From: Macrostomum lignano
Lineage: Eukaryota
DNA length: 47,949 nt
Reading direction: 5' to 3'
Assembly (NCBI GenBank): GCA_002269645.1
Contig: NIVC01003348.1
Span: 1-47,949 of the forward strand
The first letter of the stretch is position 1, and each line of letters starts with the position of its first letter. Position numbers and translations under genes: made by a program. Under the pieces are notes generated by a model. It did no database searches and had not been told where the DNA came from. It worked only from the letters and a program-made list of their open reading frames with translations. Shown here piece by piece: positions 5,749 through 47,700 of the stretch.

Positions 5749-5810
5749 AGCTTGCTATCTGGGAGATGCTTGCTATCTGGGGATGCTTGCTATCTGGGGG
5801 ATACTTGGGA
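5749..5810. repeat. Short ~18-bp tandem repeat (GCTTGCTATCTGGGGAT), about 3 copies
   Basis: Seen directly. Confidence 0.8.
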
Positions 5811-8924: not shown

Positions 8925-9060
8925 TCCACACCCACCCCCCAGTTCCACTCTTACACCTCCCTCCCCCTCTTACATCTCCCTCCCCCCTCTCACATCTCCC
9001 TATCTCCCTCCCACCTCTTACCTCTCCCTCTTCCCCTATCTTACATCTCCATATTCATCC
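8925..9060. repeat. Degenerate C/T-rich ~19-bp repeat (CTCTTACATCTCCCTCCCC)
   Basis: Several diverged copies about 170-300 bp upstream of the DOP1 ATG. Confidence 0.6.
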
Positions 9061-9195
9061 ATAGCATCGTCTGTTTCTATATCTCACAGTTACGTGTTTC
9101 TAATATTTACATTTAGCCCTGTTATTTGTCACTGAACAAAAACCGTTCTTATTTAGATTTAGTATAAGTGACGTCAATGACAGTGACAAGAATTT

Positions 9196-9223
9196 TTCAT
9201 TTCAATTTCATCAATAATTTCAG
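9196..9223 (+). promoter_or_regulatory. 3' splice acceptor 11 nt upstream of the DOP1 start codon (5'-UTR intron or trans-splice acceptor)
   Basis: T-rich tract followed by AATTTCAG|ACCCGCCAAGTATG. Confidence 0.55.
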
Positions 9224-9234
9224 ACCCGCCAAGT

Positions 9235-9761
9235 ATGTTGAATCCATTCGAGGACGAGTCCTCAATCAGGGCTCTAGAGAAGGAGCGTCGCTATAGAAAC
9301 TACAGCTCGGATATGGAGAAGATCCTGCGCCAGTTTGAGAACACATCAGACTGGGCGGATACTATACCTCTGCTGGTTCGCTTAACAAAGACTATCATTG
9401 CTAATAGGCAATACGAACTGATTCCGCACAAATTGATGCTATGCAAACGTCTGGCCCAGTGCCTGCATCAGAATATGCCTAGCGGTGTGCACGAGAAAAC
9501 GCTAGAATGCTATTCGGCCGTATTCTCCTGCGTACAGCGTACCGATTTAAAGTGCAACTTGCACTTGTACCTGTTCGGATTGTTGCCGCTGTTTGCTTAT
9601 TGCGGTTCGACTATTCGGCTGCCTTTGATTTCGTTGTACGAAGAATTTGTGCTGCCGTTGGGGCCCGCCTTGAGGCCATGCCTGCCCGGCCTGTTGCTGG
9701 CACTGCTGCCGGGGATGGAGGAGACCTCCGATCATGTGGATCGGGTGGGACAGCTGCTCAG
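9235..9761 (+). CDS. DOP1: DOP1 coding exon 1 (Dopey_N)
   Basis: ATG at 9235; donor CTCAG|GTGATT at 9761/9762; phase 2, and AG+G re-forms the Arg codon with exon 2. Confidence 0.93.
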
Positions 9762-11682: not shown

Positions 11683-11719
<37 letters not shown>

Positions 11720-14700: not shown

Positions 14701-17700
14701 TGTGCCAATCGGTGCCGGAAATCTGCGAAGATTTGTTGCTAAGGAAACTGGGCAGCGAACAGGGCGATCAAGCTGATGCTCATAAAAGATTCGCATCGCT
14801 ATGGCTTCTGATGAAGCCGGATCGGGCGCCTCAGCTGCCCAGATGCCTGCTAGCTCTGTTACATTTTGTCGGCTCAGGACACGCCTTGGAGAAGATAGTA
14901 GTGGATTGGGCTGAGCACGCGATGAGAATGGGACAGCTGCATCGACTGTTGAATCCATTGTTAGCTCTGCTGCTGTCTCCGAAAGCTGCTCGGCTCAGCG
15001 TCGATAGAATTGCCGAGGAAGCGTCCGCTAAAAATGGCTCATCGGCGAATGGCGGCGGCGGCGCGTCCACGTCGCGTTGGGATGTTGAAGAGGCGCGAAT
15101 TGTCGGTATTGAAAGCGACGGCACTGGGAAGGTAAGATAGGGTGAGATTTTGAGTTTTCTTAGCTTTCAAGGTGAGATTTTGGAGATTTCTTAGCTTTAA
15201 GGATGAGATTTTGGAGATTTCTTAGCTTTCAGGGTGAGATTTTGGAGATTTCTTAGCTTTAAGGGTGAGATTTTGATATTTCTTAGCTTTAAGCGTGAGA
15301 TTTTGAGATGGCTTAGCTTTAAGGGTGAGATTTTGATATTTCTTAGCTTTCAGGGTGACATTTTGAGATGACTTAGCTTTAGGGTGAGATTTTGACATCT
15401 CTTAACTTAAAAAAATTTTTGAGATCTCTTAGCTTTAGGAGTGAGATTTTGAGATTTCTTAGCTTAAAGAGTGAGGTTTTGAGATTGCTTAGGTCTAAGG
15501 GTTAGATGTTGTGATCTCTTAGCTTTAAGGGTGAGATTTTAAGATCTCTTAGCTTTTGGAATGAGATTTTGAGATCTCTTAGCTTTCAAGGTGAGACTAA
15601 GTGAGATTTTAAGATTGCTTAGCTTTAAGTTTGAGATTTTGAGATCCTGTATGCAATATGAGTATGGGTGAGATTTTAAGATTGCGTATTCAGTAGTGGT
15701 GGGATGTGACCTTTTGTAATTATTCAGCAACTTTATCCCAAATCCTTCTAAATCGTGACTATCAACGCCTTAATCCCCCATAATCTCAGGTAATCTATCG
15801 GGTCAACCAGTCGCCAGCCAGGGCCACCGACGGCACCAGCAATCATCAGGCATCTTCGCTAGCAAATCCATCGTCAAGCGGCTCTTCGGGCACCGCTTCA
15901 TCGGCTGGAAGGAGTCGATCAGCTGTTCAACTGTTGGCCACCGCCACCTCGGCTGCGCCAGTGCGGTTGCTAGGCGGCGGCGCCTCATCAGCATCTGCAG
16001 CTTCATTCCGATTGAGAATCAACCCGCTAGACGAAGCCTCGGTCAACGAGACGGATACGGACTCCATCGAGGCTAACTCTATTGAAGATAAAAATGTTGC
16101 AGATACTACTGAATCAGCTGCTGTTAGTAGTAGTAGCAATAGTAATAGAGAAGCGACTCCAACGCCGCCTGCTCGTGTGGCTTCATCTGGAGTTCTGTGC
16201 CCCAGCCCCGAGGCCGTGTCTGTTGTCAACGACATTATCGAAGAATTGATCACAGCCTCTTTGGCTCAAGTTGAGCGAAGCGTGCATCCGCTGTTTTCGC
16301 ACATGTGCCTGTACAATCGAAAGATTGATTGTTTGCAGGTAGGATTCTGTGGCTATGGTCCTTTATTGGGCATTGATGGGTCCTCTTGGCTATGGTCCTT
16401 TATTGGGCATTGATGGGTCCTCTTGGCTATGGTCCTTTATTGGGCATTGATGGGTCCTCTTGGCTATGGTCCTTTATTGGGCATTGATGGGTCCTCTTGG
16501 CTATGGTCCTTTATTGGGCATTGATGGGTCCTGTAGCTATGGTCCTTTATTGGGCATTGATGGGTCCTCTTGGCTATGGTCCTTTATTGGGCATTGATGG
16601 GTCCTGTAGCTATGGTCCTTTATTGGGCATTGATGGGTCCTGTAGCTATGGTCCTTTATTGGACATTGATGGGTCCTGTAGCTATGGTCCTTTATTGGGC
16701 ATTGATGGGTCCCTGGCTATGGTCCTTTATTGGGCATTGATGGGTCCTCTTGGCTATGGTCCTTTATTGGGCATTGATGGGTCCTCTTGGCTATGGTCCT
16801 TTATTGGGCATTGATGGGTCCTCTTGGCTATGGTCCTTTATTGGGCATTGATGGGTCCTGTAGCTATGGTCCTTTATTGGGCATTGATGGGTCCTCTTGG
16901 CTATGGTCCTTTATTGGGCATTGATGGGTCCTGTAGCTATGGTCCTTTATTGGACATTGATGGGTCTCTGGCTATGGTCCTTTATTGGCATTGATGGGTC
17001 CTCTGGCTATGGTCCTTTATTGGACATTGATGGTCCTCTTGGCTATGGTCCTTTATTGGGCATTGATGGGTCCTGTAGCTATGGTCCTTTATTGGGCATT
17101 GATGGGTCCTCTTGGCTATGGTCCTTTATTGGACATTGATGGGTCCTGTAGCTATGGTCCTTTATTGGACATTGATGGGTCCTCTTGGCTATGGTCCTTT
17201 ATTGGGCATTGATGGGTCCTCTGGCTATGGTCCTTTATTGGGCATTGATGGTCCTCTTGGCTATGGTCCTTTATTGGGCATTGATGGGTCCTGTAGCTAT
17301 GGTCCTTTATTGGACATTGATGGGTCCTGTAGCTATGGTCCTTTATTGGACATTGATGGGTCCTGTAGCTATGGTCCTTTATTGGACATTGATGGGTCCT
17401 GTAGCTATGGTCCTTTATTGGACATTGATGGGTCCTGTAGCTATGGTCCTTTATTGGACATTGATGGGTCCTTGTAGCTATGGTCCTTTATTGGACATTG
17501 ATGGGTCTCTTGCTATGGTCCTTTATTGGACATTGATGGGTCCTGTAGCTATGGTCCTTTATTGGACATTGATGGGTCCCTGTGGCTATGGTCCTTTATT
17601 GGACATTGATGGGTCCTCTTGGCTATGGTCCTTTATTGGGCATTGATGGGTCCTCTTGGCTATGGTCCTTTATTGGCATTGATGGGTCCTCTTGGCTATG

Positions 17701-20700
17701 GTCCTTTATTGGCATTGATGGGTCCTGTAGCTATGGTCCTTTATTGGACATTGATGGGTCCTGTAGCTATGGTCCTTTATTGGACATTGATGGGTCCTGT
17801 AGCTATGGTCCTTTATTGGACATTGATGGGTCTCTGTAGCTATGGTCCTTTATTGGACATTGATGGGTCCTCTTGGCTATGGTCCTTTATTGGCATTGAT
17901 GGGTCCTCTGTAGCTATGGTCCTTTATTGGCATTGATGGGTCCTGTAGCTATGGTCCTTTATTGGCATTGATGGGTCCTGTAGCTATGGTCCTTTATTGG
18001 GCATTGATGGGTCCTGTAGCTATGGTCCTTTATTGGCATTGATGGGTCCTGTAGCTATGGTCCTTTATTGGACACTGATGGGTCCTGTAGCTATGGTCCT
18101 TTATTGGACATTGATGGGTCCTGTAGCTATGGTCCTTTATTGGACATTGATGGGTCCTGTAGCTATGGTCCTTTATTGGACATTGATGGGTCCTGTAGCT
18201 ATGGTCCTTTATTGGACACTGATGGGTCCTGTAGCTATGGTCCTTTATTGGACACTGATGGTCCTTTATTGGACATTGATGGGTCCTGTAGCTATGGTCC
18301 TTTATTGGACACTGATGGGTCCTGTAGCTATGGTCCTTTATTGGACACTGATGGGTCCTGTAGCTATGGTCCTTTATTGGACACTGATGGGTCCTGTAGC
18401 TATGGTCCTTTATTGGCATTGATGGGTCCTGTAGCTATGGTCCTTTATTGGACATTGATGGGTCCTCTGCTATGGTCCTTTATTGGCATTGATGGGTCCT
18501 CTTGGCTATGGTCCTTTATTGGCATTGATGGGTCCTGTAGCTATGGTCCTTTATTGGACATTGATGGGTCCTCTTGGCTATGGTCCTTTATTGGGCATTG
18601 ATGGGTCCTCTTGGCTATGGTCCTTTATTGGGCATTGATGGGTCCTGTAGCTATGGTCCTTTATTGGGCATTGATGGGTCCTCTTGGCTATGGTCCTTTA
18701 TTGGGCATTGATGGGTCCTGTAGCTATGGTCCTTTATTGGGCATTGATGGGTCCTCTTGGCTATGGTCCTTTATTGGGCATTGATGGGTCCTCTTGGCTA
18801 TGGTCCTTTATTGGGCATTGATGGGTCTCTGTAGCTATGGTCCTTTATTGGGCATTGATGGGTCCTGTAGCTATGGTCCTTTATTGGACATTGATGGGTC
18901 CTGTAGCTATGGTCCTTTATTGGACACTGATGGGTCCTGTAGCTATGGTCCTTTATTGGACATTGATGGGTCCTGTAGCTATGGTCCTTTATTGGCATTG
19001 ATGGGTCCTCTTGGCTATGGTCCTTTATTGGCATTGATGGGTCCTCTTGGCTATGGTCCTTTATTGGGCATTGATGGGTCCTCTTGGCTATGGTCCTTTA
19101 TTGGCATTGATGGGTCCTGTAGCTATGGTCCTTTATTGGACATTGATGGGTCCTGTAGCTATGGTCCTTTATTGGACATTGATGGGTCCTGTAGCTATGG
19201 TCCTTTATTGGACATTGATGGGTCCTGTAGCTATGGTCCTTTATTGGCATTGATGGGTCCTCTTGGCTATGGTCCTTTATTGGCATTGATGGTCCTCTTG
19301 GCTATGGTCCTTTATTGGCATTGATGGGTCCTCTGGCTATGGTCCTTTATTGGCATTGATGGTCCTGTAGCTATGGTCCTTTATTGGCATTGATGGGTCC
19401 TGTAGCTATGGTCCTTTATTGGACATTGATGGGTCCTGTAGCTATGGTCCTTTATTGGACATTGATGGGTCCTCTTGGCTATGGTCCTTTATTGGCATTG
19501 ATGGGTCCTCTTGGCTATGGTCCTTTATTGGCATTGATGGGTCCTGTAGCTATGGTCCTTTATTGGACATTGATGGGTCCTGTAGCTATGGTCCTTTATT
19601 GGACATTGATGGGTCCTGTAGCTATGGTCCTTTATTGGACATTGATGGGTCCTGTAGCTATGGTCCTTTATTGGACATTGATGGGTCCTCTTGGCTATGG
19701 TCCTTTATTGGGCATTGATGGGTCCTGTAGCTATGGTCCTTTATTGGACATTGATGGGTCCTGTAGCTATGGTCCTTTATTGGACATTGATGGGTCCTGT
19801 AGCTATGGTCCTTTATTGGACATTGATGGGTCCTGTAGCTATGGTCCTTTATTGGACATTGATGGGTCCTGTAGCTATGGTCCTTTATTGGCATTGATGG
19901 GTCCTCTTGCTATGGTCCTTTATTGGGCATTGATGGGTCCTGTAGCTATGGTCCTTTATTGGACATTGATGGGTCCTGTAGCTATGGTCCTTTATTGGAC
20001 ACTGATGGGTCCTGTAGCTATGGTCCTTTATTGGACACTGATGGGTCCTGTAGCTATGGTCCTTTATTGGACATTGATGGGTCCTCTTGGCTATGGTCCT
20101 TTATTGGCATTGATGGGTCCTCTGGCTATGGTCCTTTATTGGGCATTGATGGGTCCTCTGTAGCTATGGTCCTTTATTGGGCATTGATGGGTCCTTAGCT
20201 ATGGTCCTTTATTGGCATTGATGGGTCCTTGGCTATGGTCCTTTATTGGCATTGATGGGTCCCTTGGCTATGGTCCTTTATTGGGCATTGATGGGTCCTC
20301 TTGGCTATGGTCCTTTATTGCGCATTGATGGGTCCTGTAGCTATGGTCCTTTATTGGACATTGATGGGTCCTGTAGCTATGGTCCTTTATTGGACACTGA
20401 TGGGTCCTGTAGCTATGGTCCTTTATTGGACATTGATGGGTCCTCTTGGCTATGGTCCTTTATTGGACATTGATGGGTCCTCTTGGCTATGGTCCTTTAT
20501 TGGCATTGATGGGTCCTCTTGGCTATGGTCCTTTATTGGACATTGATGGGTCCTCTTGGCTATGGTCCTTTATTGGCATTGATGGGTCCTCTTGGCTATG
20601 GTCCTTTATTGGCATTGATGGGTCCTGTAGCTATGGTCCTTTATTGGACATTGATGGGTCCTGTAGCTATGGTCCTTTATTGGACATTGATGGGTCCTGT

Positions 20701-23700
20701 AGCTATGGTCCTTTATTGGACATTGATGGGTCCTCTTGGCTATGGTCCTTTATTGGCATTGATGGGTCCTCTTGGCTATGGTCCTTTATTGGGCATTGAT
20801 GGTCCTCTTGCTATGGTCCTTTATTGGCATTGATGGGTCCTGTAGCTATGGTCCTTTATTGGACATTGATGGGTCCTGTAGCTATGGTCCTTTATTGGAC
20901 ATTGATGGGTCCTGTAGCTATGGTCCTTTATTGGACATTGATGGGTCCTGTAGCTATGGTCCTTTATTGGCATTGATGGGTCCTCTTGGCTATGGTCCTT
21001 TATTGGCATTGATGGTCCTCTTGGCTATGGTCCTTTATTGGCATTGATGGGTCCTGTAGCTATGGTCCTTTATTGGACATTGATGGGTCCTGTAGCTATG
21101 GTCCTTTATTGGACATTGATGGGTCCTGTAGCTATGGTCCTTTATTGGACATTGATGGGTCCTGTAGCTATGGTCCTTTATTGGACATTGATGGGTCCTG
21201 TAGCTATGGTCCTTTATTGGACATTGATGGGTCCTGTAGCTATGGTCCTTTATTGGACATTGATGGGTCCTGTAGCTATGGTCCTTTATTGGACATTGAT
21301 GGGTCCTGTAGCTATGGTCCTTTATTGGACATTGATGGGTCCTCTTGGCTATGGTCCTTTATTGGCATTGATGGGTCCTCTTGCTATGGTCCTTTATTGG
21401 CATTGATGGGTCCTCTGGCTATGGTCCTTTATTGGCATTGATGGGTCCTGTAGCTATGGTCCTTTATTGGACATTGATGGGTCCTGTAGCTATGGTCCTT
21501 TATTGGACATTGATGGGTCCTGTAGCTATGGTCCTTTATTGGACATTGATGGGTCCTGTAGCTATGGTCCTTTATTGGACATTGATGGGTCCTGTAGCTA
21601 TGGTCCTTTATTGGCATTGATGGGTCCTGGCTATGGTCCTTTATTGGCATTGATGGGTCCTCTTGGCTATGGTCCTTTATTGGCATTGATGGGTCCTGTA
21701 GCTATGGTCCTTTATTGGACATTGATGGGTCCTGTAGCTATGGTCCTTTATTGGACATTGATGGGTCCTGTAGCTATGGTCCTTTATTGGACATTGATGG
21801 GTCCTCTTGGCTATGGTCCTTTATTGGCATTGATGGGTCCTGTAGCTATGGTCCTTTATTGGACATTGATGGGTCCTGTAGCTATGGTCCTTTATTGGCA
21901 TTGATGGGTCCTGTAGCTATGGTCCTTTATTGGCATTGATGGGTCCTGTAGCTATGGTCCTTTATTGGCATTGATGGGTCCTGTAGCTATGGTCCTTTAT
22001 TGGACATTGATGGGTCCTGTAGCTATGGTCCTTTATTGGACATTGATGGGTCCTGTAGCTATGGTCCTTTATTGGACATTGATGGGTCCTGTAGCTATGG
22101 TCCTTTATTGGACATTGATGGGTCCTCTTAGCTATGGTCCTTTATTGGCATTGATGGGTCCTCTTGGCTATGGTCCTTTATTGGCATTGATGGGTCTCTG
22201 GCTATGGTCCTTTATTGGGCATTGATGGGTCCTCTTGGCTATGGTCCTTTATTGGCATTGATGGGTCCTGTAGCTATGGTCCTTTATTGGCATTGATGGG
22301 TCCTCTTGGCTATGGTCCTTTATTGGCATTGATGGGTCCTGTAGCTATGGTCCTTTATTGGGCATTGATGGGTCCTGTAGCTATGGTCCTTTATTGGCAT
22401 TGATGGGTCCTGTAGCTATGGTCCTTTATTGGACATTGATGGGTCCTCTTGGCTATGGTCCTTTATTGGACATTGATGGGTCCTTGGCTATGGTCCTTTA
22501 TTGGACATTGATGGGTCCTCTGGCTATGGTCCTTTATTGGCATTGATGGGTCCTCTTGGCTATGGTCCTTTATTGGCATTGATGGGTCCTCTTGCTATGG
22601 TCCTTTATTGGCATTGATGGGTCCTGTAGCTATGGTCCTTTATTGGACATTGATGGGTCCTGTAGCTATGGTCCTTTATTGGACATTGATGGGTCCTGTA
22701 GCTATGGTCCTTTATTGGACATTGATGGGTCCTCTGGCTATGGTCCTTTATTGGCATTGATGGGTCCTCTTGGCTATGGTCCTTTATTGGCATTGATGGG
22801 TCCTCTTGGCTATGGTCCTTTATTGGGCATTGATGGGTCCTGTAGCTATGGTCCTTTATTGGACATTGATGGGTCCTGTAGCTATGGTCCTTTATTGGAC
22901 ATTGATGGGTCCTGTAGCTATGGTCCTTTATTGGACATTGATGGGTCTCTTAGCTATGGTCCTTTATTGGACATTGATGGGTCCTCTTGGCTATGGTCCT
23001 TTATTGGCATTGATGGGTCTCTTGGCTATGGTCCTTTATTGGCATTGATGGGTCCTGTAGCTATGGTCCTTTATTGGACATTGATGGGTCCTGTAGCTAT
23101 GGTCCTTTATTGGACATTGATGGGTCCTGTAGCTATGGTCCTTTATTGGACATTGATGGGTCCTGTAGCTATGGTCCTTTATTGGACATTGATGGGTCCT
23201 GTAGCTATGGTCCTTTATTGGACATTGATGGGTCCTGTAGCTATGGTCCTTTATTGGACATTGATGGGTCCTGTAGCTATGGTCCTTTATTGGACATTGA
23301 TGGGTCCTGTAGCTATGGTCCTTTATTGGACATTGATGGGTCTCTGGCTATGGTCCTTTATTGGACATTGATGGGTCTCTTGGCTATGGTCCTTTATTGG
23401 CATTGATGGGTCCTGTAGCTATGGTCCTTTATTGGACATTGATGGGTCCTGTAGCTATGGTCCTTTATTGGACATTGATGGGTCCTGTAGCTATGGTCCT
23501 TTATTGGACATTGATGGGTCCTCTGTAGCTATGGTCCTTTATTGGACATTGATGGGTCTCTTGGCTATGGTCCTTTATTGGCATTGATGGGTCTCTTGGC
23601 TATGGTCCTTTATTGGCATTGATGGGTCCTGTAGCTATGGTCCTTTATTGGACATGATGGGTCCTGTAGCTATGGTCCTTTATTGGACATTGATGGGTCC

Positions 23701-26700
23701 TGTAGCTATGGTCCTTTATTGGACATTGATGGGTCCTGTAGCTATGGTCCTTTATTGGACATTGATGGGTCCTGTAGCTATGGTCCTTTATTGGACATTG
23801 ATGGGTCCTGTAGCTATGGTCCTTTATTGGACATTGATGGGTCCTGTAGCTATGGTCCTTTATTGGACATTGATGGGTCCTGTAGCTATGGTCCTTTATT
23901 GGACATTGATGGGTCCTCTGGCTATGGTCCTTTATTGGCATTGATGGGTCTCTGCTATGGTCCTTTATTGGCATTGATGGGTCCTGTAGCTATGGTCCTT
24001 TATTGGACATTGATGGGTCCTGTAGCTATGGTCCTTTATTGGACATTGATGGGTCCTGTAGCTATGGTCCTTTATTGGACATTGATGGGTCCTGTAGCTA
24101 TGGTCCTTTATTGGACATGATGGGTCCTGTAGCTATGGTCCTTTATTGGACATTGATGGGTCCTGTAGCTATGGTCCTTTATTGGACATTGATGGGTCCT
24201 GTAGCTATGGTCCTTTATTGGACATTGATGGGTCCTGTAGCTATGGTCCTTTATTGGACATTGATGGGTCCTCTTGGCTATGGTCCTTTATTGGACATTG
24301 ATGGGTCTCTTGGCTATGGTCCTTTATTGGCATTGATGGGTCCTGTAGCTATGGTCCTTTATTGGACATTGATGGGTCCTGTAGCTATGGTCCTTTATTG
24401 GACATTGATGGGTCCTGTAGCTATGGTCCTTTATTGGACATTGATGGGTCCTGGCTATGGTCCTTTATTGGACATTGATGGGTCCTCTGGCTATGGTCCT
24501 TTATTGGCATTGATGGGTCCTGGCTATGGTCCTTTATTGGCATTGATGGGTCCTGTAGCTATGGTCCTTTATTGGACATTGATGGGTCCTGTAGCTATGG
24601 TCCTTTATTGGACATTGATGGGTCCTGTAGCTATGGTCCTTTATTGGACATTGATGGGTCCTGTAGCTATGGTCCTTTATTGGACATTGATGGTCCTGTA
24701 GCTATGGTCCTTTATTGGACATTGATGGGTCCTGTAGCTATGGTCCTTTATTGGACATTGATGGGTCCTGTAGCTATGGTCCTTTATTGGACATTGATGG
24801 GTCCTGTAGCTATGGTCCTTTATTGGACATTGATGGGTCTCTGTAGCTATGGTCCTTTATTGGACATTGATGGGTCCTGTAGCTATGGTCCTTTATTGGA
24901 CATTGATGGGTCCTGTAGCTATGGTCCTTTATTGGACATGATGGGTCCTGTAGCTATGGTCCTTTATTGGACATTGATGGGTCCTGCTATGGTCCTTTAT
25001 TGGCATTGATGGGTCTCTGGCTATGGTCCTTTATTGGCATTGATGGGTCCTCTTGGCTATGGTCCTTTATTGGCATTGATGGGTCCTCTTGGCTATGGTC
25101 CTTTATTGGCATTGATGGGTCCCTGGCTATGGTCCTTTATTGGACATTGATGGGTCCTGTAGCTATGGTCCTTTATTGGACATTGATGGGTCCTGTAGCT
25201 ATGGTCCTTTATTGGACATTGATGGGTCCTGTAGCTATGGTCCTTTATTGGACATTGATGGGTCCTGTAGCTATGGTCCTTTATTGGACATTGATGGGTC
25301 CTGTAGCTATGGTCCTTTATTGGACATTGATGGGTCCTGTAGCTATGGTCCTTTATTGGACATTGATGGGTCCTCTGTAGCTATGGTCCTTTATTGGACA
25401 TTGATGGGTCCTGTAGCTATGGTCCTTTATTGGACATTGATGGGTCCTCTTGGCTATGGTCCTTTATTGGGCATTGATGGGTCCTGTAGCTATGGTCCTT
25501 TATTGGACACTGATGGGTCCTGTAGCTATGGTCCTTTATTGGACATTGATGGGTCCTGTAGCTATGGTCCTTTATTGGACATTGATGGGTCCTGTAGCTA
25601 TGGTCCTTTATTGGACATTGATGGGTCCTGTAGCTATGGTCCTTTATTGGCATTGATGGGTCTGTAGCTATGGTCCTTTATTGGACATTGATGGGTCCTG
25701 TAGCTATGGTCCTTTATTGGACATTGATGGGTCCTGTAGCTATGGTCCTTTATTGGACATTGATGGGTCCTCTTGGCTATGGTCCTTTATTGGACATTGA
25801 TGGGTCCTCTTGGCTATGGTCCTTTATTGGCATTGATGGGTCCTCTTGGCTATGGTCCTTTATTGGCATTGATGGGTCCTCTGGCTATGGTCCTTTATTG
25901 GCATTGATGGGTCCTGTAGCTATGGTCCTTTATTGGACATTGATGGGTCCTGTAGCTATGGTCCTTTATTGGACATTGATGGGTCCTGTAGCTATGGTCC
26001 TTTATTGGCATTGATGGGTCCTCTTGGCTATGGTCCTTTATTGGCATTGATGGGTCCTCTGGCTATGGTCCTTTATTGGCATTGATGGGTCCTGTAGCTA
26101 TGGTCCTTTATTGGACATTGATGGGTCCTGTAGCTATGGTCCTTTATTGGACATTGATGGGTCCTGTAGCTATGGTCCTTTATTGGACATTGATGGGTCC
26201 TGTAGCTATGGTCCTTTATTGGACATTGATGGGTCCTCTTGGCTATGGTCCTTTATTGGACATTGATGGGTCTCTGTAGCTATGGTCCTTTATTGGCATT
26301 GATGGGTCCTGTAGCTATGGTCCTTTATTGGACATTGATGGGTCCTGTAGCTATGGTCCTTTATTGGACATTGATGGGTCCTGTAGCTATGGTCCTTTAT
26401 TGGACATTGATGGGTCCTGTAGCTATGGTCCTTTATTGGACATTGATGGGTCCTGTAGCTATGGTCCTTTATTGGACATTGATGGGTCCTCTGGCTATGG
26501 TCCTTTATTGGCATTGATGGGTCTCTTGGCTATGGTCCTTTATTGGCATTGATGGGTCCTCTTGGCTATGGTCCTTTATTGGGCATTGATGGGTCCTGTA
26601 GCTATGGTCCTTTATTGGACATTGATGGGTCCTGTAGCTATGGTCCTTTATTGGACTGATGGGTCCTGTAGCTATGGTCCTTTATTGGACATTGATGGGT

Positions 26701-35700: not shown

Positions 35701-38700
35701 ATTGGACATTGATGGGTCCTGTAGCTATGGTCCTTTATTGGACATTGATGGGTCCTGTAGCTATGGTCCTTTATTGGACATTGATGGGTCCTGTAGCTAT
35801 GGTCCTTTATTGGACATTGATGGGTCCTGTAGCTATGGTCCTTTATTGGACATTGATGGGTCTCTGGCTATGGTCCTTTATTGGACATTGATGGGTCCTG
35901 TAGCTATGGTCCTTTATTGGACATTGATGGGTCTCTTAGCTATGGTCCTTTATTGGCATTGATGGGTCCTCTTGGCTATGGTCCTTTATTGGCATTGATG
36001 GGTCCTGTAGCTATGGTCCTTTATTGGACACTGATGGGTCCTGTAGCTATGGTCCTTTATTGGACATTGATGGGTCCTGTAGCTATGGTCCTTTATTGGA
36101 CATTGATGGGTCCTGTAGCTATGGTCCTTTATTGGCATTGATGGGTCTCTTGTAGCTATGGTCCTTTATTGGACATTGATGGGTCTCTTGCTATGGTCCT
36201 TTATTGGCATTGATGGGTCCTGTAGCTATGGTCCTTTATTGGACATTGATGGGTCCTGTAGCTATGGTCCTTTATTGGACATTGATGGGTCCTGTAGCTA
36301 TGGTCCTTTATTGGACATTGATGGGTCCTGTAGCTATGGTCCTTTATTGGACATTGATGGGTCCTGTAGCTATGGTCCTTTATTGGACATTGATGGGTCC
36401 TGTAGCTATGGTCCTTTATTGGACATTGATGGGTCCTGTAGCTATGGTCCTTTATTGGACATTGATGGGTCCTGTAGCTATGGTCCTTTATTGGACATTG
36501 ATGGGTCCTGTAGCTATGGTCCTTTATTGGACATTGATGGGTCCTGTAGCTATGGTCCTTTATTGGACATTGATGGGTCCTGTAGCTATGGTCCTTTATT
36601 GGACATTGATGGGTCCTGTAGCTATGGTCCTTTATTGGACATTGATGGGTCCTGTAGCTATGGTCCTTTATTGGCATTGATGGGTCTCTGTAGCTATGGT
36701 CCTTTATTGGACATTGATGGGTCCTGGCTATGGTCCTTTATTGGACATTGATGGGTCCTTGTAGCTATGGTCCTTTATTGGCATTGATGGGTCCTGTAGC
36801 TATGGTCCTTTATTGGACATTGATGGGTCCTGTAGCTATGGTCCTTTATTGGACATTGATGGGTCCTGTAGCTATGGTCCTTTATTGGACATTGATGGGT
36901 CCTGTAGCTATGGTCCTTTATTGGACATTGATGGGTCCTGTAGCTATGGTCCTTTATTGGACATTGATGGGTCCTGTAGCTATGGTCCTTTATTGGACAT
37001 TGATGGGTCCTGTAGCTATGGTCCTTTATTGGACATTGATGGGTCCTGTAGCTATGGTCCTTTATTGGACATTGATGGGTCCTGTAGCTATGGTCCTTTA
37101 TTGGACACTGATGGGTCCTGTAGCTATGGTCCTTTATTGGACATTGATGGGTCCTCTTGGCTATGGTCCTTTATTGGCATTGATGGGTCTCTTGTAGCTA
37201 TGGTCCTTTATTGGCATTGATGGGTCTCTGTAGCTATGGTCCTTTATTGGCATTGATGGGTCCTGTAGCTATGGTCCTTTATTGGACATTGATGGGTCCT
37301 GTAGCTATGGTCCTTTATTGGACATGATGGGTCCTGTAGCTATGGTCCTTTATTGGACATTGATGGGTCCTCTTGGCTATGGTCCTTTATTGGCATTGAT
37401 GGGTCTCTTGGCTATGGTCCTTTATTGGCATTGATGGGTCCTGTAGCTATGGTCCTTTATTGGCATTGATGGGTCCTGTAGCTATGGTCCTTTATTGGAC
37501 ATTGATGGGTCCTGTAGCTATGGTCCTTTATTGGACATTGATGGGTCCTGTAGCTATGGTCCTTTATTGGACATTGATGGGTCCTCTGGCTATGGTCCTT
37601 TATTGGGCATTGATGGGTCCTCTTGGCTATGGTCCTTTATTGGCATTGATGGGTCCTGTAGCTATGGTCCTTTATTGGACATTGATGGGTCCTGTAGCTA
37701 TGGTCCTTTATTGGACATTGATGGGTCCTGTAGCTATGGTCCTTTATTGGACATTGATGGGTCCTCTTGCTATGGTCCTTTATTGGCATTGATGGGTCCT
37801 CTTGCTATGGTCCTTTATTGGCATTGATGGGTCCTGTAGCTATGGTCCTTTATTGGCATTGATGGGTCCTGTAGCTATGGTCCTTTATTGGACATTGATG
37901 GGTCCTGTAGCTATGGTCCTTTATTGGACATTGATGGGTCCTCTTGTAGCTATGGTCCTTTATTGGACATTGATGGGTCCTCTTGGCTATGGTCCTTTAT
38001 TGGACATTGATGGGTCCTGTAGCTATGGTCCTTTATTGGACATTGATGGGTCCTCTTGGCTATGGTCCTTTATTGGCATTGATGGGTCCTGGCTATGGTC
38101 CTTTATTGGCATTGATGGGTCCTGTAGCTATGGTCCTTTATTGGCATTGATGGGTCCTGTAGCTATGGTCCTTTATTGGACATTGATGGGTCCTGTAGCT
38201 ATGGTCCTTTATTGGACATTGATGGGTCCTGTAGCTATGGTCCTTTATTGGACATTGATGGGTCCTGTAGCTATGGTCCTTTATTGGACATTGATGGGTC
38301 CTCTTGGCTATGGTCCTTTATTGGACATTGATGGGTCCTGTAGCTATGGTCCTTTATTGGCATTGATGGGTCCTGTAGCTATGGTCCTTTATTGGACATT
38401 GATGGGTCCTGTAGCTATGGTCCTTTATTGGCATTGATGGGTCCTGTAGCTATGGTCCTTTATTGGACATTGATGGGTCCTGTAGCTATGGTCCTTTATT
38501 GGACATTGATGGGTCCTGTAGCTATGGTCCTTTATTGGACATTGATGGGTCCTGTAGCTATGGTCCTTTATTGGACATTGATGGGTCCTGTAGCTATGGT
38601 CCTTTATTGGACATTGATGGGTCCTGTAGCTATGGTCCTTTATTGGACATTGATGGGTCCTGTAGCTATGGTCCTTTATTGGACATTGATGGGTCCTGTA

Positions 38701-41700
38701 GCTATGGTCCTTTATTGGACATTGATGGGTCCTGTAGCTATGGTCCTTTATTGGACATTGATGGGTCCTGTAGCTATGGTCCTTTATTGGACATTGATGG
38801 GTCCTGTAGCTATGGTCCTTTATTGGCACTGATGGGTCCTGTAGCTATGGTCCTTTATTGGACATTGATGGGTCCCTGTAGCTATGGTCCTTTATTGGCA
38901 TTGATGGGTCCTGTAGCTATGGTCCTTTATTGGACATTGATGGGTCCTGTAGCTATGGTCCTTTATTGGACATTGATGGGTCTCTTGGCTATGGTCCTTT
39001 ATTGGACATTGATGGGTCCTGTAGCTATGGTCCTTTATTGGACATTGATGGGTCCTGTAGCTATGGTCCTTTATTGGACATTGATGGGTCCTGTAGCTAT
39101 GGTCCTTTATTGGACATTGATGGGTCCTGTAGCTATGGTCCTTTATTGGACATTGATGGGTCCTGTAGCTATGGTCCTTTATTGGACATTGATGGGTCCT
39201 GTAGCTATGGTCCTTTATTGGACATTGATGGGTCCTGTAGCTATGGTCCTTTATTGGACATTGATGGGTCCTGTAGCTATGGTCCTTTATTGGACACTGA
39301 TGGGTCCTGTAGCTATGGTCCTTTATTGGCATTGATGGGTCCTCTTGGCTATGGTCCTTTATTGGCATTGATGGGTCCTCTTGGCTATGGTCCTTTATTG
39401 GCATTGATGGGTCCTCTTGGCTATGGTCCTTTATTGGCATTGATGGGTCCTGTAGCTATGGTCCTTTATTGGACATTGATGGGTCCTGTAGCTATGGTCC
39501 TTTATTGGACATTGATGGGTCCTGTAGCTATGGTCCTTTATTGGACATTGATGGGTCCTCTGGCTATGGTCCTTTATTGGCATTGATGGGTCCTCTTGGC
39601 TATGGTCCTTTATTGGGCATTGATGGGTCCTCTTGGCTATGGTCCTTTATTGGGCATTGATGGGTCCTGTAGCTATGGTCCTTTATTGGACATTGATGGG
39701 TCCTGTAGCTATGGTCCTTTATTGGACACTGATGGGTCCTGTAGCTATGGTCCTTTATTGGACATTGATGGGTCCTGTAGCTATGGTCCTTTATTGGACA
39801 TTGATGGGTCCTCTTGGCTATGGTCCTTTATTGGGCATTGATGGGTCCTCTTGCTATGGTCCTTTATTGGCATTGATGGGTCCTGTAGCTATGGTCCTTT
39901 ATTGGACATGATGGGTCCTGTAGCTATGGTCCTTTATTGGACATTGATGGGTCCTGTAGCTATGGTCCTTTATTGGACATTGATGGGTCCTCTTGGCTAT
40001 GGTCCTTTATTGGCATTGATGGGTCCTCTTGCTATGGTCCTTTATTGGGCATTGATGGGTCCTGTAGCTATGGTCCTTTATTGGCACTGATGGGTCCTGT
40101 AGCTATGGTCCTTTATTGGACATGATGGGTCCTGTAGCTATGGTCCTTTATTGGACATTGATGGGTCTCTTGGCTATGGTCCTTTATTGGCATTGATGGG
40201 TCCTCTTGCTATGGTCCTTTATTGGCATTGATGGGTCCTCTGGCTATGGTCCTTTATTGGCATTGATGGGTCCTCTGTAGCTATGGTCCTTTATTGGCAT
40301 TGATGGGTCCTGTAGCTATGGTCCTTTATTGGACATTGATGGGTCCTGTAGCTATGGTCCTTTATTGGACATTGATGGGTCCTGTAGCTATGGTCCTTTA
40401 TTGGACATTGATGGGTCCTGTAGCTATGGTCCTTTATTGGACATTGATGGGTCCTGTAGCTATGGTCCTTTATTGGACATTGATGGGTCCTGTAGCTATG
40501 GTCCTTTATTGGACATGATGGGTCCTGTAGCTATGGTCCTTTATTGGCACTGATGGGTCCTGTAGCTATGGTCCTTTATTGGACATTGATGGGTCCTGTA
40601 GCTATGGTCCTTTATTGGACATTGATGGGTCTCTGGCTATGGTCCTTTATTGGCATTGATGGGTCCTCTGCTATGGTCCTTTATTGGCATTGATGGGTCC
40701 TGGCTATGGTCCTTTATTGGCATTGATGGGTCCTGTAGCTATGGTCCTTTATTGGACACTGATGGGTCCTGTAGCTATGGTCCTTTATTGGACATGATGG
40801 GTCCTGTAGCTATGGTCCTTTATTGGACATTGATGGGTCCTGTAGCTATGGTCCTTTATTGGACATTGATGGGTCCTGTAGCTATGGTCCTTTATTGGAC
40901 ATTGATGGGTCCTGTAGCTATGGTCCTTTATTGGACACTGATGGGTCCTGTAGCTATGGTCCTTTATTGGACATGATGGGTCCTGTAGCTATGGTCCTTT
41001 ATTGGACATTGATGGGTCTCTGTGCTATGGTCCTTTATTGGCATTGATGGGTCCTCTTGCTATGGTCCTTTATTGGCATTGATGGGTCCTGTAGCTATGG
41101 TCCTTTATTGGACATTGATGGGTCCTGTAGCTATGGTCCTTTATTGGACATTGATGGGTCCTGTAGCTATGGTCCTTTATTGGACATTGATGGGTCCTGT
41201 AGCTATGGTCCTTTATTGGACATTGATGGGTCCTGTAGCTATGGTCCTTTATTGGACATTGATGGGTCCTGTAGCTATGGTCCTTTATTGGACATTGATG
41301 GGTCCTGTAGCTATGGTCCTTTATTGGACATGATGGGTCCTGTAGCTATGGTCCTTTATTGGACATTGATGGGTCCTCTGTAGCTATGGTCCTTTATTGG
41401 CATTGATGGGTCCTCTTGGCTATGGTCCTTTATTGGCATTGATGGGTCCTCTTGGCTATGGTCCTTTATTGGCATTGATGGGTCCTGTAGCTATGGTCCT
41501 TTATTGGACATTGATGGGTCCTGTAGCTATGGTCCTTTATTGGACATTGATGGGTCCTGTAGCTATGGTCCTTTATTGGACATTGATGGGTCCTGTAGCT
41601 ATGGTCCTTTATTGGACATTGATGGGTCCTCTTGGCTATGGTCCTTTATTGGCATTGATGGGTCCTCTTGGCTATGGTCCTTTATTGGCATTGATGGGTC

Positions 41701-44700
41701 CTGTAGCTATGGTCCTTTATTGGCATTGATGGGTCCTGTAGCTATGGTCCTTTATTGGACATGATGGGTCCTGTAGCTATGGTCCTTTATTGGACATTGA
41801 TGGGTCCTGTAGCTATGGTCCTTTATTGGACATTGATGGGTCCTGTAGCTATGGTCCTTTATTGGACATTGATGGGTCCTGTAGCTATGGTCCTTTATTG
41901 GACATTGATGGGTCCTGTAGCTATGGTCCTTTATTGGACATTGATGGGTCCTGTAGCTATGGTCCTTTATTGGACATTGATGGGTCCTGTAGCTATGGTC
42001 CTTTATTGGACATTGATGGGTCCTGTAGCTATGGTCCTTTATTGGACATTGATGGGTCCTGTAGCTATGGTCCTTTATTGGACATTGATGGGTCCTGTAG
42101 CTATGGTCCTTTATTGGACATTGATGGGTCCTGTAGCTGTGGTCCTTTATTGGACATAGATGGGTCCTGTAGCTATGGTCCTTTATTGGACATGATGGGT
42201 CCTGTAGCTATGGTCCTTTATTGGACATTGATGGGTCCTCTTGGCTATGGTCCTTTATTGGGCATTGATGGGTCCTCTTGGCTATGGTCCTTTATTGGGC
42301 ATTGATGGGTCCTCTTGGCTATGGTCCTTTATTGCGCATTGATGGGTCCTGTAGCTATGGTCCTTTATTGGACATTGATGGGTCCTGTAGCTATGGTCCT
42401 TTATTGGACACTGATGGGTCCTGTAGCTATGGTCCTTTATTGGACATTGATGGGTCCTCTTGGCTATGGTCCTTTATTGGGCATTGATGGGTCCTCTTGG
42501 CTATGGTCCTTTATTGGGCATTGATGGGTCCTCTTGGCTATGGTCCTTTATTGGCATTGATGGGTCCTGTAGCTATGGTCCTTTATTGGACATTGATGGG
42601 TCCTGTAGCTATGGTCCTTTATTGGACATTGATGGGTCCTGTAGCTATGGTCCTTTATTGGACATTGATGGGTCCTTGTAGCTATGGTCCTTTATTGGAC
42701 ATTGATGGGTCCTCTTGGCTATGGTCCTTTATTGGGCATTGATGGGTCCTCTTGGCTATGGTCCTTTATTGGGCATTGATGGGTCCTGTAGCTATGGTCC
42801 TTTATTGGACACTGATGGGTCCTGTAGCTATGGTCCTTTATTGGACATTGATGGGTCCTGTAGCTATGGTCCTTTATTGGACATTGATGGGTCCTCTTGG
42901 CTATGGTCCTTTATTGGGCATTGATGGGTCCTCTTGGCTATGGTCCTTTATTGGGCATTGATGGGTCCTGTAGCTATGGTCCTTTATTAGGCACTGATGG
43001 GTCCTGTAGCTATGGTCCTTTATTGGACACTGATGGGTCCTGTAGCTATGGTCCTTTATTGGACATTGATGGGTCCTGTAGCTATGGTCCTTTATTGGAC
43101 ATTGATGAGTCCTCTTGGCTATGGTCCTTTATTGGCATTGATGGGTCCTCTTGCTATGGTCCTTTATTGGCATTGATGGGTCCTCTTGCTATGGTCCTTT
43201 ATTGGGCATTGATGGGTCCTGTAGCTATGGTCCTTTATTGGACACTGATGGGTCCTGTAGCTATGGTCCTTTATTGGACACTGATGGGTCCTGTAGCTAT
43301 GGTCCTTTATTGGACATTGATGGGTCCTGTAGCTATGGTCCTTTATTGGACATTGATGGGTCCTGTAGCTATGGTCCTTTATTGGACATTGATGGGTCTG
43401 TAGCTATGGTCCTTTATTGGACACTGATGGGTCCTGTAGCTATGGTCCTTTATTGGCACTGATGGGTCCTGTAGCTATGGTCCTTTATTGGACATTGATG
43501 GGTCTCTTGCTATGGTCCTTTATTGGCATTGATGGGTCCTCTTGGCTATGGTCCTTTATTGGCATTGATGGGTCTCTTGGCTATGGTCCTTTATTGGCAT
43601 TGATGGGTCCTCTTGCTATGGTCCTTTATTGGACATTGATGGGTCCTGTAGCTATGGTCCTTTATTGGACACTGATGGGTCCTGTAGCTATGGTCCTTTA
43701 TTGGACACTGATGGGTCCTGTAGCTATGGTCCTTTATTGGACACTGATGGGTCCTGTAGCTATGGTCCTTTATTGGACATTGATGGGTCCTGTAGCTATG
43801 GTCCTTTATTGGACATTGATGGGTCCTGTAGCTATGGTCCTTTATTGGACACTGATGGGTCCTGTAGCTATGGTCCTTTATTGGACATTGATGGGTCCTG
43901 TAGCTATGGTCCTTTATTGGCATTGATGGGTCCTTGTAGCTATGGTCCTTTATTGGCATTGATGGGTCTCTTGCTATGGTCCTTTATTGGCATTGATGGG
44001 TCCTGTAGCTATGGTCCTTTATTGGACATTGATGGGTCCTGTAGCTATGGTCCTTTATTGGACATTGATGGGTCCTGTAGCTATGGTCCTTTATTGGACA
44101 TTGATGGGTCCTGTAGCTATGGTCCTTTATTGGACACTGATGGGTCCTGTAGCTATGGTCCTTTATTGGACACTGATGGGTCCTGTAGCTGTGGTCCTTT
44201 ATTGGACATTGATGGGTCCTCTTGGCTATGGTCCTTTATTGGACACTGATGGGTCCTGTAGCTGTGGTCCTTTATTGGACATTGATGGGTCCTCTTGGCT
44301 ATGGTCCTTTATTGGACATTGATGGGTCCTCTTGGCTATGGTCCTTTATTGGGCATTGATGGGTCCTCTTGGCTATGGTCCTTTATTGGGCATTGATGGG
44401 TCCTGTAGCTATGGTCCTTTATTGGACACTGATGGGTCCTGTAGCTATGGTCCTTTATTGGACACTGATGGGTCCTGTAGCTATGGTCCTTTATTGGACA
44501 TTGATGGGTCCTGTAGCTATGGTCCTTTATTGGACATTGATGGTCCTCTTGGCTATGTCCTTTATTGGCATTGATGGGTCCTCTTGGCTATGGTCCTTTA
44601 TTGGCATTGATGGGTCCTCTTGCTATGGTCCTTTATTGGCATTGATGGGTCCTGTAGCTATGGTCCTTTATTGGACACTGATGGGTCCTGTAGCTATGGT

Positions 44701-47700
44701 CCTTTATTGGACATTGATGGGTCCTTTTGGCTATGGTCCTTTATTGGGCATTGATGGGTCCTGTAGCTATGGTCCTTTATTGGACACTGATGGGTCCTGT
44801 AGCTATGGTCCTTTATTGGACATTGATGGGTCCTGTAGCTATGGTCCTTTATTGGACATTGATGGGTCCTGTAGCTATGGTCCTTTATTGGACATTGATG
44901 GGTCCTGTAGCTATGGTCCTTTATTGGACACTGATGGGTCCTGTAGCTATGGTCCTTTATTGGACACTGATGGGTCCTGTAGCTATGGTCCTTTATTGGA
45001 CAGTGATGGGTCCTGTAGCTATGGTCCTTTATTGGACAGTGATAGGTCCTGTAGCTATGGTCCTTTATTGGACAGTGATAGGTCCTGTAGCTATGGTCCT
45101 TTATTGGACAGTGATGGGTCCTGTAGCTATGGTCCTTTACGAGTATTTGGCTGATGGGTCCTCTACCTATAGTCCTTTATTGGACAGCTAAGCCCTGGGT
45201 CACCTTAAGGGTCCTTCAGTAGCAAACCCCGAGTTTTAGCTTGTAAAAACTACTAGATATTTTTTCCTTCCAATGTGTCTCTAAGGTGTCTGGGTTAAGG
45301 AGTTATAAATTTATAAGCAAACTAATTAACACTATTCGCAGGTAAGCTACGTGCTATCCCGCCTGCTAGCCCTGCTGTCAGCTCTGCCCCAGCTGTTCAC
45401 AGCTAAGCTGGCTGGCACCCAGCTTTTGCCGGCTAAATCGCCCGGCTCTTATCAGGTGTTTGCGCTCTTCCTTCGGCACAGGGCCTGCGTTGATGGGGCT
45501 AACTTCTTTCAGGTGAGAAGGCATCGAGAGACTGAGGAAGTTTTTTAGAGAGTTTCATCTAGATGGAGCTCAAGATAGTCCGAGAGGGAGATCGAGAGAG
45601 TGAGAGGGAGATCTAGAGAGTGAGAGGGAGATCGAGAGAGTGAGAGGGAGAGAGAGAGTTAGAGGGAGAGAGAGAGTGAGAGGGAGAGAGAGAGTTAGAG
45701 GGAGAGAGAGAGTGAGAGGGAGAGAGAGAGTGAGAGGGAGAGAGAGAGTGAGAGGGAGATCGAGAGAGTGAGAGGGAGATCGAGAGAGTGAGAGGGAGAT
45801 CGAGAGAGTGAGAGGGAGAGAGAGAGTGAGAGGGAGATCGAGAGAGTGAGAGGGAGATCGAGAGAGTGAGAGGGAGATAGAGTGAGAGGGAGATCGAGAG
45901 GGAGATCTAGAGACTGAGAGGGAGATCGAGAGAGTGAGAGGGAGATCTAGAGAGTGAGAGGGAGATCGAGAGAGTGAGAGGGAGATCTAGAGAGTGAGAG
46001 GGAGCTCGAGAGAGCCAGAGGGAGATCGAGAGAATGAGAGAGAGATCAGGAGAGTGAGAGAGGGAGATCGAGAGAGTGAGAGTGAGATCGGGAGAGCGAG
46101 ACGGAGAAATCTTACTGATTCCAAAACCAACCCATTCACGCAGGACCCGCCTCACGAGCTGCACAAGTCCTACAAATCCGTGACCTACCTCCACCTGCTA
46201 ACTAGCCTAGCCCTGGATTACGTCAGATCCTGCTATTCTCCCTACGCCAGAGAGCGCGTTGAATCTCCCGAATTAATCGGCAATAGGCTAGTGCAGACTC
46301 GAGCTGCGGACCTACTATGCAGTTTAGCCCAATGCGCCGCATCTGGCGACTCACCGGAAGCTGCCAGACAGTTGAGAGACAATCGATTACAGTTTAGTAG
46401 GCTAGCATTGCACTGCCTGTGCTCAGCACTGGCTGCCTGTTATAGTCACTGGACTGTGGAATCGCACGTGTTCTCGGCTAGGATTGTACAGTTTAATGAG
46501 ATCGGCGTTGGCTGGCTGACCAGAGCGGCTCATGTGAAATCTTTGGCTAGTCTGACTCTGCGTCTATTGGCTTTGATGAAGCCTAGTCCGATGGCTGGTA
46601 ATGCTTCAGCTGCGGATGAGGGCGCTACCAAAAAGGCTGCTGTGAGATCCGCGTCTGCTACTGCTCCTGGTGTAGGGGATTTTGTCTATCAGGTACGATT
46701 TGTTATGTTCTATTAGCTTAGATACAGTCATTAGACTGTTGATCAGGGTCATTAGATATTGTTGAGTAGGGTCATTAGATAATGTTGAGTAGGGTCATTA
46801 GATATTGTTGAGTAGGGTCATTAGATATTGTTGAGCAGGGTCATTAGATACTGTTGAGTAGGGTCATTAGATACTGTTGAGTAGGGTCTTTAGATATTGT
46901 TGACTAGGGCCATTAGATATTGTTGAGTAGGGCCATTAGACAATGTTGAATAGGGTCATCAGATTGTTGAGTAGTCATCAGATTGTTGAGTAGTCATTAG
47001 ACTGTTGAGTAGTCATTAGACTGTTGAGTAGTCATTAGACTGTTGAGTAGTCATTAGACTGTTGAGTAGTCATTAGACTGTTGAGTAGGGTCATTAGACT
47101 GTTGAGTAGTCATTAGATTGTTGAGTAGTCATTAGACTGTTGAGTAGGGTCATCAGATTTTTGAGTAGTCATTAGACTGTTGAGTAGTCATTAGACTGTT
47201 GAGTAGTCATTAGACTGTTGAGTAGTCATTAGACTGTTGAGTAGTCATTAGACTGTTGAGTAGTCATTAGACTGTTGAGTAGTCATTAGACTGTTGAGTA
47301 GTCATTAGACTGTTGAGTAGTCATTAGACTGTTGAGTAGGGTCATTAGACTGTTGAGTAGTCATTAGATTGTTGAGTAGTCATTAGACTGTTGAGTAGGG
47401 TCATCAGATTTTTGAGTAGTCATTAGACTGTTGAGTAGTCATTAGACTGTTGAGTAGTCATTGGACTGTTGAGTAGTCATTAGACTGTTGAGTAGTCATT
47501 AGACTGCTGAGTAGGGTCATTAGACTGCTAATTAGATTGTTGATCATTTCATTAGACTTATCAGGCGGTCATTGGTCATTAGTAATGAAATCTCTAAAAG
47601 ACTCTTAGTCTCTTTTATCTATGGCAGGACTGCCTGCCGCTGTCTGGCCAACCGCTGCTCATGCTTGCTCTGCGACTCGGCCTCGGCCCGGCTTGCCATA

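Follow-up and report, generated by a model that had tools for sequence, protein, structure and literature searches.

The window analysed here is contig NIVC01003348.1 of Macrostomum lignano (assembly GCA_002269645.1), taken over its whole length of 47,949 nucleotides (nt) and read on the + strand. It carries nine exons of a gene that, judged by its predicted protein, is a member of the DOP1/Dopey membrane-trafficking family, and a 36-bp unit, repeated in tandem about 805 times, makes up nearly all of intron 6 of this gene. Two further copies of the gene were compared with it, both from the public Mlig_3_7 assembly and both reached via GenBank proteins clustered with the M. lignano protein A0A1I8G8L0. 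These are referred to below as L001 (NIVC01000029.1), in which intron 6 is short, and L002 (NIVC01000100.1), in which it is long.

The gene model lies on the + strand, has GT..AG borders at all introns, and reads through 1,337 codons with no stop and no frameshift.

9235..9761, + strand: Dopey exon 1; start codon at 9235; Pfam Dopey_N, E = 1.8e-55; gene model
9762-10934, + strand: intron 1, 1,173 nt; gene model
10935..11160, + strand: Dopey exon 2; Dopey_N profile positions 163-250; gene model
11161-11525, + strand: intron 2; gene model
11526..11906, + strand: Dopey exon 3; Dopey_N positions 250-305; variable poly-Gly tract; gene model
11907-12534, + strand: intron 3; gene model
12535..13227, + strand: Dopey exon 4; in-frame model; L001 exon 97.8% identical
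13228-14366, + strand: intron 4; gene model
14367..15131, + strand: Dopey exon 5; in-frame model; exon matched in L001 and L002
15132-15789, + strand: intron 5; gene model
15790..16338, + strand: Dopey exon 6; ends ...NRKIDCLQ; last 18 residues open the TPR_DOP1 match
16339-45341, + strand: intron 6; GT..AG, 29,003 nt
45342..45512, + strand: Dopey exon 7, 171 nt; starts VSYVLSRL; gene model and Pfam
45513-46143, + strand: intron 7; gene model
46144..46692, + strand: Dopey exon 8; TPR_DOP1 profile positions 73-182; gene model
46693-47627, + strand: intron 8; gene model
47628..47777, + strand: Dopey exon 9; gene model; gene extends past the window

Exons 1-3 together cover positions 2-305 of the 306 in the Pfam profile Dopey_N (PF04118). 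The window protein is 97% identical to A0A1I8G8L0, and its next best matches are vertebrate DOP1A/B, at 36-41% identity over the N-terminal domain. The proteins of the homeologs extend to 1,989 amino acids and also carry TPR_DOP1B and DOP1_C (PF24598). The first-pass annotation of this DNA had proposed that the Dopey motif continues in frame across intron 6, and three comparisons agree. Positions 1-74 of TPR_DOP1 (PF24601) match residues 166-239 of the joined exons 6 and 7, with the junction after residue 183; the alignment to residues 1198-1351 of horse DOP1B is collinear and gapless at the junction; and three deposited M. lignano proteins share the sequence ...NRKIDCLQ|VSYVLSRL there.

Intron 6 and its tandem array

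At 29,003 nt, intron 6 is 24.7 times as long as the next largest intron of the model (1,173 nt). The array was delimited with Tandem Repeats Finder (TRF), which reported a single array at 16347-45186 with a period of 36, 804.7 copies, 95% matches and a score of 47,976; it takes up 28,840 of the 29,003 intron bases (99.4%). The first-pass description of an intron about 25 times the next largest, about 99% one 36-bp family and some 800 repeats long is thus borne out by TRF and the gene model. Chance composition yields nothing approaching an array of 29 kb with 95% unit identity. Monomers cut separately at a fixed anchor number 806, all head to tail on the + strand, of which 492 are 36 nt long, 169 are 35 nt and 100 are 37 nt. 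A 27-nt core, with up to four errors allowed, matches 802 times, each time on the + strand. A scan of about 130 kb from the window, L001 and L002, about 80 kb of it non-array, placed the 36-mer core in intron 6 alone.

16339..16346, + strand: 5' splice site GTAGGATT; only these 8 nt at the intron's 5' end are non-repeat
16347..45186, + strand: 36-bp tandem array, ~805 units; commonest unit TATGGTCCTTTATTGGACATTGATGGGTCCTGTAGC; TRF and monomer census
16354..19231, + strand: 5' edge tenth of the array; rich in GGGCATTG and ACACTG (paralog-type) units
42209..45167, + strand: 3' edge tenth of the array; rich in ACACTG units as in the short paralog (21/81 units)
45187..45341, + strand: unique 3' end of intron 6; branch-point-like ACTAATTAAC, acceptor TTCGCAG; 93% identical to L001

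The borders of the intron are CAG|GTAGGA ... ACTAATTAACACTATTCGCAG|GT, and its excision restores the reading frame in phase 0. Donor, acceptor, branch/pyrimidine region and frame all mark it as a predicted spliceosomal GT-AG intron. The array was also considered as coding sequence and rejected: frames through 36-nt units stay open for up to 342 codons, but units of 35 and 37 nt disrupt the frame, and orthologs have no insertion at the junction.

Base composition is flat along the array, with a GC content of 0.45-0.46, a GC skew of about +0.22 and an AT skew of about -0.45. The AvaII motif GGTCC occurs 1,550 times, or 1.93 times per unit, close to the two per unit noted in the first-pass annotation. 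MspA1I has no site in the array, and its predicted fragment in the window measures about 29.1 kb. There is no strong higher-order period: identity between units is about 0.2 and flat across lags, apart from a value of 0.32 at lag 1, which reflects runs of identical neighbours, and a weak rise at lags 5-6. The longest exact internal repeat, 431 nt, is such a run of identical units, and self-comparison of the array revealed no multi-kb exact internal duplication. The term "satellite" used earlier is apt in that one repeat family makes up the array, but it is generous. A 36-bp unit repeated head to tail, at one locus in the sequence scanned and with variable copy number, fits a minisatellite or variable number tandem repeat (VNTR).

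Some further features of the gene model can be recorded here. The acceptors at 14367, 15790 and 45342 (exons 5, 6 and 7) run straight into donor-like motifs, AG|GTGAGC, AG|GTAATC and AG|GTAAGC, respectively. The joining of exons 6 and 7 recreates CAG|GTAAGC, a stronger donor than the original CAG|GTAGGA, and skipping of exon 7 (171 nt) would preserve the frame. The short-intron homeolog has the same donor-like motif at exon 7, so the motif is not an adaptation to the giant intron. The present model and both GenBank models use the acceptor at 46144, whereas in the A0A1I8G8L0 model exon 7 is spliced to ...SYKSVTY, which lies eight residues further downstream; either an alternative acceptor or differing gene predictions would account for this. 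Upstream of the start codon (window 9200-9234) a pyrimidine-rich stretch is followed by TTTCAG|ACCCGCCAAGT, possibly an acceptor for trans-splicing of a spliced leader, or else the 3' border of an intron in the 5' untranslated region. Trans-splicing affects many M. lignano mRNAs (PMC5730564).

Three copies of the gene

The three copies differ enormously in the length of intron 6:

window: intron 6 of 29,003 nt, ~805 units
L002: intron 6 of 23,474 nt, ~650 units
L001: intron 6 of 397 nt, 5.5 units

The exons of L001 are 96-99% identical to those of the window, with a synonymous divergence (dS) of 0.048 and a ratio of non-synonymous to synonymous substitution rates (dN/dS) of 0.156, and on this evidence L001 is an older homeolog of the Dopey gene. 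The dN/dS value is pairwise, between the window and L001. The unique sequence of L002 is about 99% identical to the window at the DNA level. Several of its intron lengths differ, and L002 is either a separate copy of nearly the same sequence or another assembly's version of this locus. In L001 and L002 alike a GCN5/PCAF-like gene comes after Dopey. The M. lignano genome has been described as three subgenomes (S, L1 and L2) that diverge by about 2% in single-nucleotide polymorphisms (SNPs) and by up to 36% when indel lengths are counted (PMC10733133), and the relations among the three loci fit that picture. Exon 3 also varies between copies, in a (GGC)n poly-glycine tract at window 11685-11719: it encodes 12 glycines in the window, whereas the L001 product has 8, and in L002 the exon is 15 nt longer, with a GGC run of 16.7 copies against 11.7 in the window.

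Window, L001 and L002 have the 36-mer and the unique flanks of intron 6 in common, and the 72 nt preceding the acceptor are identical in the window and L001. The presence of the same 36-mer between the same unique flanks indicates that the array grew, or less likely shrank, in place, and was not inserted from elsewhere. At the donor side about 45 nt of unique sequence are kept in L001 and L002, of which about 27 nt have been lost in the window. Exon SNPs at five sites, none more than 90 nt from the junction, separate the short copy from the long ones: at 16254, 16297, 16302, 45419 and 45431 the long copies have A, T, C, C and G and the short copy G, A, T, T and A, respectively.

The two long arrays share an internal structure. 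Units of the ACACTG type, which is the unit of the short copy, pile up in the first and last tenth of both, and the ACATTG and GGCATTG variants dominate the centre. This pattern, with old units at the edges and homogenised units in the middle, is typical of array evolution by unequal exchange. The unit variants occur in similar proportions in the window and L002, but their order is not collinear except near the ends and the arrays differ in length by 5.5 kb. That order and length differ so much while the flanks are only about 1% diverged points to fast turnover of the array. A nucleotide alignment of the two arrays, made to place the 5.5-kb difference, was uninformative: any segments align at 92-96%.

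Minisatellites are not restricted to intron 6. All eight introns at all three loci are composed, to between 50 and 99%, of a minisatellite private to that intron, with units for introns 1-8 of 23, 3, 22, 21, 30, 36, 20 and 19/23 bp (19 in the window). The later introns of Dopey and the neighbouring GCN5/PCAF-like gene are likewise built of minisatellites, and tandem repeats make up 24% of L001. For comparison, simple and tandem repeats constitute 15% of the M. lignano genome, in which the mean intron is 1.1-1.4 kb (PMC5730564). The identity of each repeat is kept between homeologs while its copy number is not: the seven other introns differ by less than 3-fold between homeologs, versus about 146-fold between gene copies in intron 6. 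Since every intron is built on a private minisatellite, intron 6 appears as the runaway tail of a pervasive pattern. We found no earlier description of intronic minisatellites in Macrostomum in the literature searched, the coverage of which was incomplete. A broader proposition can be put forward tentatively, as possible rather than probable: that most M. lignano introns are built around a private minisatellite, that intron length evolves mainly by changes in array copy number, and that runaway arrays are a main source of the ~36% indel divergence between subgenomes and could drive unequal expression of homeologs and, eventually, the loss of gene copies.

Origin and use of the expanded array

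The account we favour, and consider probable, is that a small 36-bp minisatellite private to this intron expanded in place in one Dopey homeolog to about 805 units, and that the array is spliced as an ordinary intron and is near-neutral or mildly costly, its cost buffered by homeologs. The direction of change would be expansion and not contraction, and growth presumably proceeded by replication slippage combined with unequal exchange between sister or homologous arrays. The array would be transcribed within the pre-mRNA and excised in one step as a GT..AG intron, leaving the expanded copy expressed and correctly spliced and the array itself selectively near-neutral. Two properties may explain why such an array is tolerated. 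Its sense-strand unit has no polyadenylation (poly(A)) hexamer or GTRAG donor and almost no AG|GT, and neither the splice sites nor the 3' branch/acceptor region has been altered. In addition, further copies of Dopey exist in the neopolyploid genome, including one whose intron 6 measures only 397 nt, and these could buffer any cost in expression.

Counts of RNA-processing motifs are consistent with this account. On the sense strand the array contains no AATAAA or ATTAAA and no GTRAG; it contains 557 weak acceptor-like TGTAG sites and two AGGT, both in the last 150 nt and each followed by CCTG. Recursive-splicing ratchet sites (AG|GTRAGT) are absent from the array. With the sense strand silent for processing in these respects, the simplest reading is removal in one step as an ordinary intron. 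The antisense strand, by comparison, has 804 AATAAA, about one per 36-nt unit, and any antisense transcript of the array would run into poly(A) signals at 36-nt intervals; the orientation of the array may thus matter for processing.

G-quadruplex motifs (G3+ N1-7 x4) and initiation-zone motifs of the R-loop predictor QmRLFS number zero on either strand of the array; GGG runs number 857 on the sense strand, but the distances between them are too great for either motif, and the only feature that would favour R-loops is the G>C skew of +0.22. Special self-folding of the RNA through GGUCC quasi-palindromes was considered and dropped: a first folding z-score of -2.76 was not distinctive on wider comparison, in which values ranged from -0.7 to -2.0 for three array segments, from -4.5 to +0.8 for other minisatellites in introns and from -1.1 to -1.4 for exons. 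The speed commonly cited for RNA polymerase II is 2-4 kb/min, at which 29 kb costs roughly 7-15 additional minutes, a case unlike that of the megabase Y introns of Drosophila (PMC6508621). Together with the existence of a short-intron copy, these observations weaken the functional effects suggested in the first-pass annotation, namely delayed expression, R-loops or an abundant repeat RNA.

Annotation offers a hint as to whether a gene with so long an intron is used. The GenBank model PAA90920.1 for L002 begins in exon 6 and joins ...CLQ|VSY... over the 23.5-kb intron. The M. lignano annotation was built from RNA-seq and de novo assembled transcripts, with multi-mapping reads allowed (PMC5730564), and this transcript-derived model is suggestive of splicing across a long intron. 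The Dopey coding sequence of the window, with 1,337 stop-free codons and a dN/dS of 0.156, looks alive. The existence of another Dopey copy with a 397-nt intron 6 means that the organism does not depend on the transcription of 800 repeats.

Several considerations count against the expansion of a functional, ordinarily spliced intron. Contraction in L001 may have occurred instead, as an interior deletion would likewise leave edge-type units. Since the flanking exons share about 99% identity among the copies, transcripts of the short copy could underlie the L002 model, and pairwise dN/dS cannot show constraint on the expanded copy in particular. Exon 6 of L002 has a frameshifting 1-nt deletion in a GG run (L002 ~9666), which may be either a PacBio consensus error or real decay. 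Because of this deletion and of a GTG>ATG change at L002 ~10001, which creates the start of the annotated 980-amino-acid product, only the 3' half of that copy, from exon 6 on, is annotated. Finally, about a third of the window monomers are 35 or 37 nt long, and some of these may be long-read consensus errors.

The last point belongs to a larger concern, namely that the giant array is an artefact, the true array being much shorter or differently sized and a long-read assembler having inflated or looped it. The reference assemblies of M. lignano do rest on noisy long reads, 1-nt indels in a third of the units are what an unpolished consensus would contain, and misassembly had been raised as a caveat in the first-pass annotation. 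That caveat stands as regards exact array length and unit order, which are uncertain because of the noisy reads and known assembly problems in M. lignano. A large array is nevertheless present in two different assembled sequences, at 29.0 kb and, in the second, separately assembled copy, 23.5 kb, and both arrays have the same unit variants in similar proportions and the same contrast of edge and centre. The multi-kb exact duplication that an assembler loop would leave is absent, the longest exact repeat being 431 nt, and we judge an artefact on this scale very improbable. The decay of a superfluous duplicate, in which the giant array cripples transcription or splicing, the short homeolog supplies the function and the long copies drift towards pseudogenes, is unlikely, but it has observations in its favour: redundant homeologs are present, L002 has the exon 6 frameshift and an annotated 3' half alone, and the window has lost the ~27 nt next to the donor. 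Opposed to it are the intact 1,337 codons of the window copy, the dN/dS of 0.156, the preservation of the splice sites and of the 72 nt nearest the acceptor, and the transcript-derived L002 model that spans the long intron; moreover, the GG run in which the L002 deletion sits is a typical context for long-read error.

The array could also have gained a function of the sort proposed for the human CACNA1C 30-mer and the Drosophila Y loops: it might act within the intron as an enhancer or chromatin element, serve in timing, or supply repeat RNA. By analogy only, arrays in CACNA1C act as enhancers in reporter assays (bioRxiv 10.1101/311795); more than 23 kb of array has been retained in two copies of the Dopey gene, and AATAAA is confined strictly to one strand (804 antisense, none sense). 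The nearly complete difference in unit order between the long copies, which stand 5.5 kb apart in length with flanks only ~1% diverged, speaks instead for unconstrained turnover. In addition, the short homeolog manages without the array, RNA folding of array segments is not unusual, and G-quadruplex and R-loop-initiation motifs are absent. A gain of function consequently seems to us a distinctly doubtful explanation, and expansion in place of a near-neutral intronic minisatellite is the reading we retain.

On that reading the locus is an intronic VNTR expansion of a known type that is extreme in size, and its value lies mainly in being an internally controlled natural experiment. Within a single nucleus, copies of one essential-type gene have 5.5, ~650 and ~805 intronic units. 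With the five junction-proximal SNPs, existing RNA-seq data could be used to measure the cost in transcription and splicing of a 23-29-kb repeat intron against a built-in control, and M. lignano is amenable to transgenesis (PMC5730564). The locus also shows homeologs of a young polyploid diverging mainly by repeat indels and not by substitutions. It calls for caution in annotation and read mapping, as the GenBank annotation of the long-intron copy begins no earlier than exon 6.

Elsewhere in the window, positions 4337-5676 contain a 236-nt inverted repeat, 99% complementary (4763-4998 / 5118-5353), around a (GA/TC)n core. On either side of it lies an array of one and the same 23-bp unit (4337-4715 and 5353-5676), which recurs at L001 29392-29556; the structure is either a dispersed foldback-type element or a palindromic artefact of long-read assembly. 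GC content steps sharply from 29-37% upstream (1-9000) to 44-50% in the gene (9000-47949). Over the transcribed region G exceeds C in nearly all 1-kb bins and T exceeds A in most, the A-rich intron 1 (10001-11000) being the clearest exception. An Rfam scan of window 1-17000 gave no match, and Pfam searches of the open frames in window 1-9000 gave only sub-threshold helix-turn-helix matches.

Relation to known systems

Within the DOP1/Dopey family (yeast Dop1, Aspergillus DopA, C. elegans PAD-1, human DOP1A/DOP1B) the window protein shares Dopey_N and TPR_DOP1 and is ordinary; the oddity of the gene is confined to its intron. Human genes offer pathogenic intronic expansions of units of 3-6 bp that form triplexes, G-quadruplexes or R-loops: FXN GAA, C9orf72 GGGGCC, CNBP CCTG and RFC1 AAGGG. 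Like these, the Dopey array appears to be an intronic repeat expanded in place that could interfere with transcription or RNA processing. It differs from them in that the 36-mer has no G-quadruplex or R-loop-initiation motif and is not known to lower expression.

The Y-linked genes kl-2, kl-3 and kl-5 of Drosophila have gigantic, satellite-filled introns (PMC6508621; PMC11207136; PMC8248703). Dopey intron 6 resembles them in being more than 99% tandem repeats that have to be transcribed and spliced from a protein-coding gene. The Drosophila introns, however, are megabases in size, consist of simple satellites of 5-10 bp and are located on a heterochromatic Y; their expression is confined to spermatocytes, and they need the dedicated RNA-binding proteins Blanks, Heph and Maca. 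At 29 kb and with a 36-bp unit, Dopey intron 6 is neither of megabase size nor made of simple satellite, as in intron gigantism of the Drosophila type (PMC6508621). Its host is a housekeeping-type gene of which a short-intron copy exists as well, and on present evidence there seems to be no sign of, or need for, a special expression programme.

The closest analogue is the VNTR in intron 3 of human CACNA1C, a 30-bp repeat ("TRACT") in arrays of 3-30+ kb (Song, Lowe & Kingsley 2018, bioRxiv 10.1101/311795; PMC13131567). Both loci have a unit of minisatellite size (36 versus 30 bp) at a single intronic site in a conserved, broadly important gene; in both, hundreds of head-to-tail copies vary in number and unit sequence between gene copies. 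Each also appears to be a lineage-specific expansion that is prone to mis-sizing in reference assemblies. The enhancer activity and phenotype association of the CACNA1C array have no known counterpart in Dopey. The two loci differ as well in the comparison that each affords, since the Dopey copies are homeologs in one neopolyploid genome and not alleles in a population, and in proportion, the Dopey array forming 99% of its intron whereas the CACNA1C array is a small part of a much larger one.

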